A stretch of DNA of 64,000 nt, from the NCBI GenBank assembly GCA_964106915.2, contig OZ066919.1; one strand, 5' to 3'. The translations under genes and the position numbers were made by a program. The notes beneath the pieces are model-generated. The model ran no database searches. It had not been told where the DNA came from and saw only the letters and a program-made list of their open reading frames with translations. Shown here piece after piece: positions 16,595 to 16,752 of this stretch (the stretch's first letter is position 1; each line of letters opens with the position of its first letter). Source of the stretch: Podarcis gaigeae. Taxonomy: Eukaryota.

Positions 16595-16752
16595 TTACAG
16601 ATAGGTAGCCGTGTTGGTCTGCCATAGTCAAAACAAAAAAAAATTCCTTCCAGTAGCACCTTAAAGACCAACTAAGTCAGTTCTTGGTATGAGCTTTCGT
16701 GTGCATGCACACTTCTTCAGATACTTCTTCAGATAACATATCTTCTTCAGAT
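16595..16752 (-). mobile_element. Short Penelope-like element (PLE) terminal fragment with 12-bp TSD
   Basis: The minus strand reads ...tatctgaagaagtgtgcatgcacacgaaagctcataccaagaactgacttagttggtctttaaggtgctactgg..., which I recognise as the pattern of reptile PLE termini. It is flanked by ATGTTGATCCAT at 16583-16594 and 16753-16764. Confidence 0.75.
16687..16724 (-). ncRNA. Minimal type-I hammerhead ribozyme motif (PLE-associated)
   Basis: The minus strand reads GUAU-CUGAAGA-A-GUGUG(CAUG)CACAC-GAA-AGCU-C^AUAC. This gives the CUGANGA and GAAA core boxes, hairpin stem II, a palindromic AGCU in place of stem III, and a GUAU/AUAC stem I. Confidence 0.65.

Follow-up and report, generated by a model that had tools for sequence, protein, structure and literature searches.

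A young insertion with a minimal hammerhead motif in an intron of NEGR1, very probably a copy of an abundant non-coding Penelope-type element and likely a silent passenger

In the analyzed stretch of lizard DNA (64 kb, here called the window), an intron of NEGR1 contains a short insertion close to a coding exon, and on the transcript strand this insertion reads as a hammerhead motif. An earlier note on this DNA had suggested that the motif may be a recently inserted, dimerization-dependent self-cleaving site in the pre-mRNA of a neuronal gene, which could affect splicing or transcript yield. The locus thus raises the question whether a ribozyme acts on the host transcript or whether the insertion is a passenger, and from which kind of element it originates.

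The insertion and its hammerhead motif

The locus comprises the following features:

16401-16521, minus strand: NEGR1 coding exon of 121 nt, first half of Ig domain 3 (AG/GT boundaries and phmmer)
16522-16594, minus strand: 73-nt end of the intron comprising the polypyrimidine tract and AG, a region left intact by the insertion
16583-16594, no strand assigned: exon-side copy of the target-site duplication, ATGTTGATCCAT (perfect 12-nt direct repeat, of which relatives keep a single copy)
16595-16752, minus strand (presumed sense strand of the element): 158-bp retroelement insertion, non-coding mini-element of the Penelope type (bracketing duplications, empty site in the three relatives B, C and D, contig depth, closed reading frames)
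16595-16686, minus strand: region 3' of the hammerhead motif with a hairpin, a U9GU4 run and an AC-rich end (fold)
16687-16724, minus strand: minimal type-I hammerhead with stems I and II and both catalytic boxes, without a stem III loop (manual reading and descriptor)
16690-16691, minus strand: predicted scissile bond, 3' of C17 at 16691 (standard hammerhead numbering applied to the sequence)
16725-16752, minus strand: copy-specific 5' extension of 28 nt (direct repeats; other copies diverge just past 16724)
16753-16764, no strand assigned: distal copy of the target-site duplication (direct-repeat search)

The exon is bounded on the minus strand by AG at 16523-16522 and GT at 16400-16399. When the peptide of this single exon was compared with the PDB by phmmer, human NEGR1 (6u6t/6dld) was the best match, with an E-value of 7e-16 and 39 of 39 residues, followed by neurotrimin as the next-best IgLON protein (E 7e-8). 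Since the exon matches NEGR1 on the minus strand, the hammerhead lies in the sense strand of this gene, as the earlier note had assumed. The distances given there as approximately 170 and 73 nt also proved correct: the predicted cut is located 169 nt upstream of the exon start (16521), and the end of the insert is separated from the 3' splice site by 73 nt.

The insert at 16595-16752 is flanked on both sides by perfect 12-bp target-site duplications. Their sequence, ATGTTGATCCAT, occurs at both edges as direct repeats spaced 170 nt apart, which agrees with the 158-bp insertion and 12-bp duplication reported before. The motif, which runs on the minus strand from 16724 to 16687, has the sequence GUAU-CUGAAGA-A-GUGUG/CAUG/CACAC-GAAA-GC-UC^AUAC. 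Its core (16720-16691) is complete and comprises C3 to A9 with A at N7, G12, A13 and A14, the A15.1-U16.1 pair and C17 at the H17 position. Stem I (GUAU/AUAC) has four Watson-Crick pairs and constitutes a short, open helix I. Helix II consists of 5 bp (GUGUG/CACAC) closed by a CAUG tetraloop; it opens with G10.1-C11.1 and is preceded by a single unpaired A following A9. At the stem III positions, GAAA is followed by GC (15.2/16.2), directly adjacent to each other, and then by UC, resulting in the palindrome AGCU. Because the two stem III bases of each side are contiguous, this stem cannot close in a monomer. By standard numbering the cut falls between 16691 and 16690. In all these respects, i.e. 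the catalytic boxes, stem II, the 4-bp stem I, the cleavage triplet, the reduction of stem III to AGCU and the position of the predicted cut, the first reading of the motif was borne out.

A descriptor of this architecture was compiled. It requires at least 4 bp each in helix I and helix II, the box CUGANGA between them with a bulge allowed after it, then GAAA with a complementary dinucleotide, and finally U plus any nucleotide other than G. On both strands of the 64-kb window it found a single match, the motif at 16724-16687, whereas 300 first-order Markov sequences of equal length gave none, also when its requirements were relaxed. Thus, the motif is real and not a chance match. The comparison with Rfam hammerhead models that the earlier note had proposed as a check gave no support: at the gathering threshold no hammerhead family (RF00163, RF00008, RF02275, RF02276, RF02277) was detected anywhere in the window, and a search of 351 nt at E<=10 yielded only chance snoRNA-like matches. 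This is expected, since the motif is devoid of the stem III loop and is therefore not scored by these models.

Downstream of the hammerhead in sense orientation, the region 16595-16686 together with 16687-16690 gives a distance of 96 nt from the cut site to the end of the element. According to the computed fold of the minus strand, a long imperfect hairpin extends from 16672 to 16613. The AC-rich end of the element contains CCAACAC at 16616-16610, 15 to 21 nt from the terminus. Read from the sequence, all three sense frames of the insert are closed. At the opposite end, the extension 16725-16752 is composed of two extra copies of the 11-nt motif ATCTGAAGAAG with the 7-nt filler ATATGTT between them, the second extra copy overlapping base 16724. 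AACATAT, the reverse complement of this filler, bridges the distal duplication and the insert; at 16735-16757 (minus strand) the two sequences form a small hairpin-like inverted repeat around CTGAAGAAG, possibly left behind by template switching or snap-back at integration.

Age and abundance of the element

To the region 15000-18500, Logan contigs of four DNA runs were aligned, stemming from a second sample of the presumed species of the window (organism A) and from three closely related species (organisms B, C and D). Counted from the alignment table, the divergence of the three relatives from the window amounts to about 0.8-1.3% of positions. In each of them, one contig joins 16582 directly to 16753, skipping 170 bases. 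At this joint 12 bases fit either side, and the flanks are at least 255 bases long, demonstrating that the empty site possesses one copy of the duplication. The second sample of organism A revealed no such joint; its flanking contigs enter the insert by 24 nt (to 16618) and by 47 nt (from 16706). The presence of the insert in organism A and the empty site in B, C and D mean that the insertion occurred after A had split from its relatives or is still segregating. The insertion is young and lineage-specific. The recent date suspected earlier is hence supported by the comparison with related species, the site being empty in three of them, and this presence/absence pattern across four close species indicates that the element family was active very recently. 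In the splice region 16522-16594, there were no differences between the four runs among the best-supported ones listed. A small lineage-specific indel was observed at 16212 in the intron downstream of the exon, where organisms B, C and D have 10 extra bases (TTTACCTGCA or TTTATCTGCA) compared to organism A.

The family of the element is massively repeated in each of the four species. In two bins over the insert, the summed contig depth reached 0.33-2.45 million, compared to 7-55 in the unique flanks, a ratio of approximately 10^5 in all four species that reflects summed depth and not copy number. In each run, 63-72 contigs match the element up to 16724 and then continue with unrelated AT-rich sequence (agreement 0.35-0.39). 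From this divergence it follows that the usual unit, 130 nt long (16724 to 16595), stops at the outer margin of helix I. The fold of this unit is no more stable than that of shuffled sequences (z = +0.46), so fold stability gives no support. Other copies contain joints that go back from 16724 to positions between 16643 and 16682 with one or two filler bases, and these joints show that partial tandems carrying two hammerheads exist in the family. At 16595, no comparably supported break was present among the contigs listed; the boundary at 16724 stands out instead. The hammerhead half of the unit (16638-16724) seems somewhat deeper than 16595-16637, yet summed contigs are an unreliable copy profile, and a variable A/T run at 16635 breaks the contig alignments.

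Within the window, only the query itself was recovered by patterns of 26-30 nt allowing as many as 3 mismatches, by a core pattern with gaps, by blastn (word size 7) and by the descriptor. Exact patterns of the hammerhead core and the 3' region gave 0 matches in metagenome, viral and prokaryote genome collections. Joints from 16724 to 17260 or 18324 were considered as evidence of a longer element and rejected, as their sides measure only about 20-25 nt and they are explained by the adjacency of abundant repeats.

At other loci, the 16595 end of the element adjoins (AAT)n-like sequence (joints 15019 to 16595), which hints at insertion into AT-rich repeats. A long (AAT)n microsatellite at 14963-15116 adjoins the G/C-rich end of a high-copy repeat, and a (CA/TG)n run at 18276-18500 has C-rich high-copy flanks. 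Between them, at 17200-17330, lies a MITE-like palindrome, whose arms lie around GGGACTACAATTCCCATCATCCC and its complement. With a summed contig depth of up to 1.6-4.6 million in the four species, it is as abundant as the hammerhead element.

Affiliation and origin of the element

Minimal hammerheads (min-HHRs) were defined by Cervera and de la Pena in 2014 in the terminal repeats of Penelope-like elements (PLEs; PMC4209133). Beyond what the search descriptor of these authors covers, they are characterized by a conserved G10.1-C11.1 pair, palindromic positions 15.2/16.2 and a short helix I combined with a longer helix II (PMC4209133). They occur mostly as single dispersed copies from truncated elements, are present in reptiles and cleave weakly even as dimers (PMC4209133). 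As cited in PMC6765202, minimal hammerheads of metazoan PLEs were also the subject of Lunse, Weinberg and Breaker (2016). The motif in the NEGR1 intron possesses all of these hallmarks: the core, helix II with an unpaired nucleotide, self-complementary positions 15.2/16.2 and a helix I of 4-5 bp. What it has in common with the published PLE motifs is the type-I arrangement with a 4-bp helix I, the longer helix II beginning with G10.1-C11.1, the unpaired base after A9 and the self-complementary AGCU in place of a stem III loop. The families also share a high copy number with mostly single dispersed motifs. By contrast, the primary sequence of the lizard family was not found in the literature searched, and a full-text search for element strings of 17-22 nt did not retrieve any paper. 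The architecture of the motif therefore supports the previous proposal of a Penelope-type minimal hammerhead that needs a partner for stem III.

Other properties of the insert also match PLEs, for which heavy 5' truncation, variable duplications, partial tandems and terminal extensions of 30-40 bp have been described (PMC8557442). The perfect 12-bp duplication, with its empty site, lies within the variable range of approximately 10-15 bp typical of these elements (PMC8557442). A frame for a reverse transcriptase and a GIY-YIG endonuclease is not contained in the 158 bp; thus, the copy must be a derivative that is either truncated or non-autonomous.

The closest system for comparison is the Poseidon element of Anolis carolinensis (Poseidon_Ac, PAc). 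It also derives from a squamate and shows the same min-HHR layout of box, unpaired base, helix II, GAAA, palindromic dinucleotide and UC. Its hammerhead is cut 26 nt after the start codon, and the AC-rich stem-loop in which its reverse transcription begins lies at 111-118 nt of the frame (PMC11167929), from which a distance of 85-92 nt between cut and start can be derived. The AC-rich terminus thus lies 85-92 nt past the cut in Poseidon_Ac; in the insert, the presumed 3' terminus of the element is 96 nt past it. On the other hand, the region after the Poseidon_Ac hammerhead opens a reading frame of 846 aa, whereas all frames of the NEGR1 insert are closed, and the AUG at helix II of Poseidon_Ac is replaced by AAG. 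No primary-sequence similarity between the insert and the Poseidon_Ac consensus was recognizable by eye, and a string search of the supplement gave 0 matches. The closed frames, the AAG and the missing similarity by eye suggest that the insert represents a different, non-coding family.

Non-coding PLE derivatives have been proposed for animal retrozymes (bioRxiv 10.64898/2026.07.22.740005). The metazoan non-LTR retrozymes, which are thought to be non-autonomous derivatives of PLE pLTRs (PMC7229834; bioRxiv 10.64898/2026.07.22.740005), resemble the insert in being short and non-coding, in their hammerhead repeats and in their duplications of more than 4 bp (PMC7229834). However, retrozymes consist of tandem units of approximately 170-400 nt with canonical hammerheads and produce circular RNAs, while the insert has one 130-nt unit with one minimal motif. 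Instead of the two or more head-to-tail hammerhead units of a retrozyme, a single unit and a single hammerhead were found in 64 kb. The intronic hammerheads HH9 (RECK) and HH10 (RF02275/RF02277) likewise reside in the sense strand of vertebrate introns, and RECK had been cited as a precedent for an exapted hammerhead. This comparison fails. HH9 and HH10 are canonical, with a closed stem III and loop-loop contacts, and are conserved in amniotes, whereas the motif in NEGR1 is devoid of stem III, absent from sister species and gave no match to the Rfam models of HH9 or HH10.

The insert is thus one more dispersed copy of a hammerhead-bearing mini-element of the Penelope type, a class described since 2014. 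There is a high probability that it arose as a young, lineage-specific retrotransposed copy of a short, non-coding, very high-copy element of the Penelope-like type and that it is a silent passenger. Its integration might have proceeded as follows. A PLE reverse transcriptase/endonuclease would have nicked the NEGR1 intron, and cDNA synthesis would have been initiated where the element RNA has its AC-rich 3' end (16595). Copying would then have run for approximately 130 nt through the hammerhead to the 5' end of the RNA (around 16724), where stuttering or a template switch could have added the 28 nt of repeated 5'-terminal motif. Staggered cuts would have given rise to the 12-bp duplication. 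The hammerhead would serve the element, if anything, and hammerheads of this class presumably work only if two copies supply each other's stem III or if the protein of the element takes part.

It is improbable, though worth weighing, that the element has the opposite orientation. It would then be a SINE-like plus-strand element running from 16595 to 16724, mobilized by a LINE and ending in a short tandem-repeat 3' tail (ACTTCTTCAGAT)n, and the hammerhead would be a captured or fossil piece of a PLE without any part in transposition. Such an orientation would account for the sharp family boundary at 16724, seen in 63-72 contigs per run, for the varying repeat number at this end in the NEGR1 copy and for the internal A-rich run of the plus strand at 16630-16643. 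Moreover, the apparently greater depth of the half 16638-16724 is what 5' truncation of a plus-strand element would produce, and in the joints of other copies a complete unit is succeeded by one that begins at 16643-16682. However, contig depth and unitig breaks say little in favor of either orientation. The low probability assigned to the opposite orientation is due to two observations: a complete min-HHR with all hallmarks of PLEs is very unlikely to occur by accident in a 130-nt unit (0 of 300 random 64-kb sequences), and the distance from the hammerhead to the far end of the element fits the geometry of Poseidon.

The NEGR1 transcript and other elements of the window

For a PLE-type copy inserted in sense orientation, it has to be considered whether the hammerhead acts on the NEGR1 RNA. 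Most likely, the lone copy in the pre-mRNA is catalytically silent and a neutral passenger. A second minimal hammerhead was not detected on either strand of the 64-kb window, which extends in the transcript over 47 kb upstream and 17 kb downstream of the motif. In nearest-neighbor calculations, which ignore tertiary contacts, the active double-hammerhead dimer of two 38-nt cores has -11.1 kcal/mol compared to -13.6 kcal/mol for two free monomers, stem III contributing only about -0.5 kcal/mol to the modelled dimer. A competing duplex formed via the fully palindromic 14-nt segment of helix II reaches -30.6 kcal/mol. According to this model, the active dimer is thermodynamically disfavored. The related hammerhead of Anolis Poseidon was cleaved only when the protein of the element was added to the RNA construct (-126/+235), and in RNA-seq data no read ends at its cut site (PMC11167929). 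The sister species lack the insert, so that there is neither a history nor any sign of selection for a role in the host.

That the motif is nevertheless an active, dimerization-dependent self-cleaving site, cutting the NEGR1 pre-mRNA 169 nt upstream of the exon and thereby lowering its yield or disturbing splicing, is highly improbable. The intact core, stem I and stem II and their position in the NEGR1 sense strand are in line with this proposal, the abundance of the family implies that partner RNAs may exist in the nucleus, and the Poseidon construct shows that a hammerhead RNA of this kind can be cleaved once the protein is provided (PMC11167929). Against it stand the lack of a partner within the 47 kb upstream and the 17 kb downstream that the window covers of this transcript, the small energy contribution of stem III, an active dimer that loses both to free monomers and to the duplex of the helix II palindrome, the low activity even of dimeric constructs (PMC4209133), the RNA-seq data without ends at the Poseidon cut site (PMC11167929) and an insertion that is not conserved and bears no sign of selection. 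Consequently, neither a self-cleaving site nor an effect on splicing, as put forward in the earlier note, is supported by the data, the 73-nt splice region being intact as well; the note itself had warned that a lone copy may be inactive.

The insert could influence splicing by ordinary signals. In the sense strand, U9GU4 followed by CAG (16643-16619) might serve as a decoy acceptor; it precedes the real 3' splice site by 97 nt, and splicing to it would shift the reading frame. In length and U content this tract exceeds the authentic polypyrimidine tract (16540-16524), but the authentic branch region and acceptor are intact and nearer to the exon, and U-rich runs of this kind are common in introns. 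An effect by this route is therefore very unlikely. Also highly improbable is cleavage of the lone hammerhead in vivo, either with a PLE protein of the family that binds the retained 3' region and helps the RNA to fold, as demonstrated in vitro for Anolis Poseidon RNA, or by pairing in trans with the abundant family transcripts. If it took place, a lineage-specific insertion would cut the NEGR1 pre-mRNA 169 nt before an exon, and carrier and empty-site species would constitute a natural experiment on ribozyme control of a neuronal gene.

The insert matters little at present. The locus offers a clean comparison between carriers and empty sites for the effect of a lone minimal hammerhead in a sense intron on the host transcript.

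Elsewhere in the window, further retroelements were noticed. At 32061-32871, overlapping open frames of 250-260 aa exist on both strands; the plus-strand frame has a weak match to reverse transcriptases (E 7e-4), which is below the Pfam cut-off, and the region probably represents the remnant of an old retroelement. At 27258-27430 there are 173 consecutive N, an assembly gap or a masked stretch. On the plus strand at 36217-41013, antisense to NEGR1, two long open frames of 346 aa and 1246 aa are arranged in tandem. In the second, larger one, domains of an AP-type endonuclease (E 2e-13) and of a reverse transcriptase (E 1.5e-36) were recognized, and the whole looks like a coding-intact L1-like LINE.
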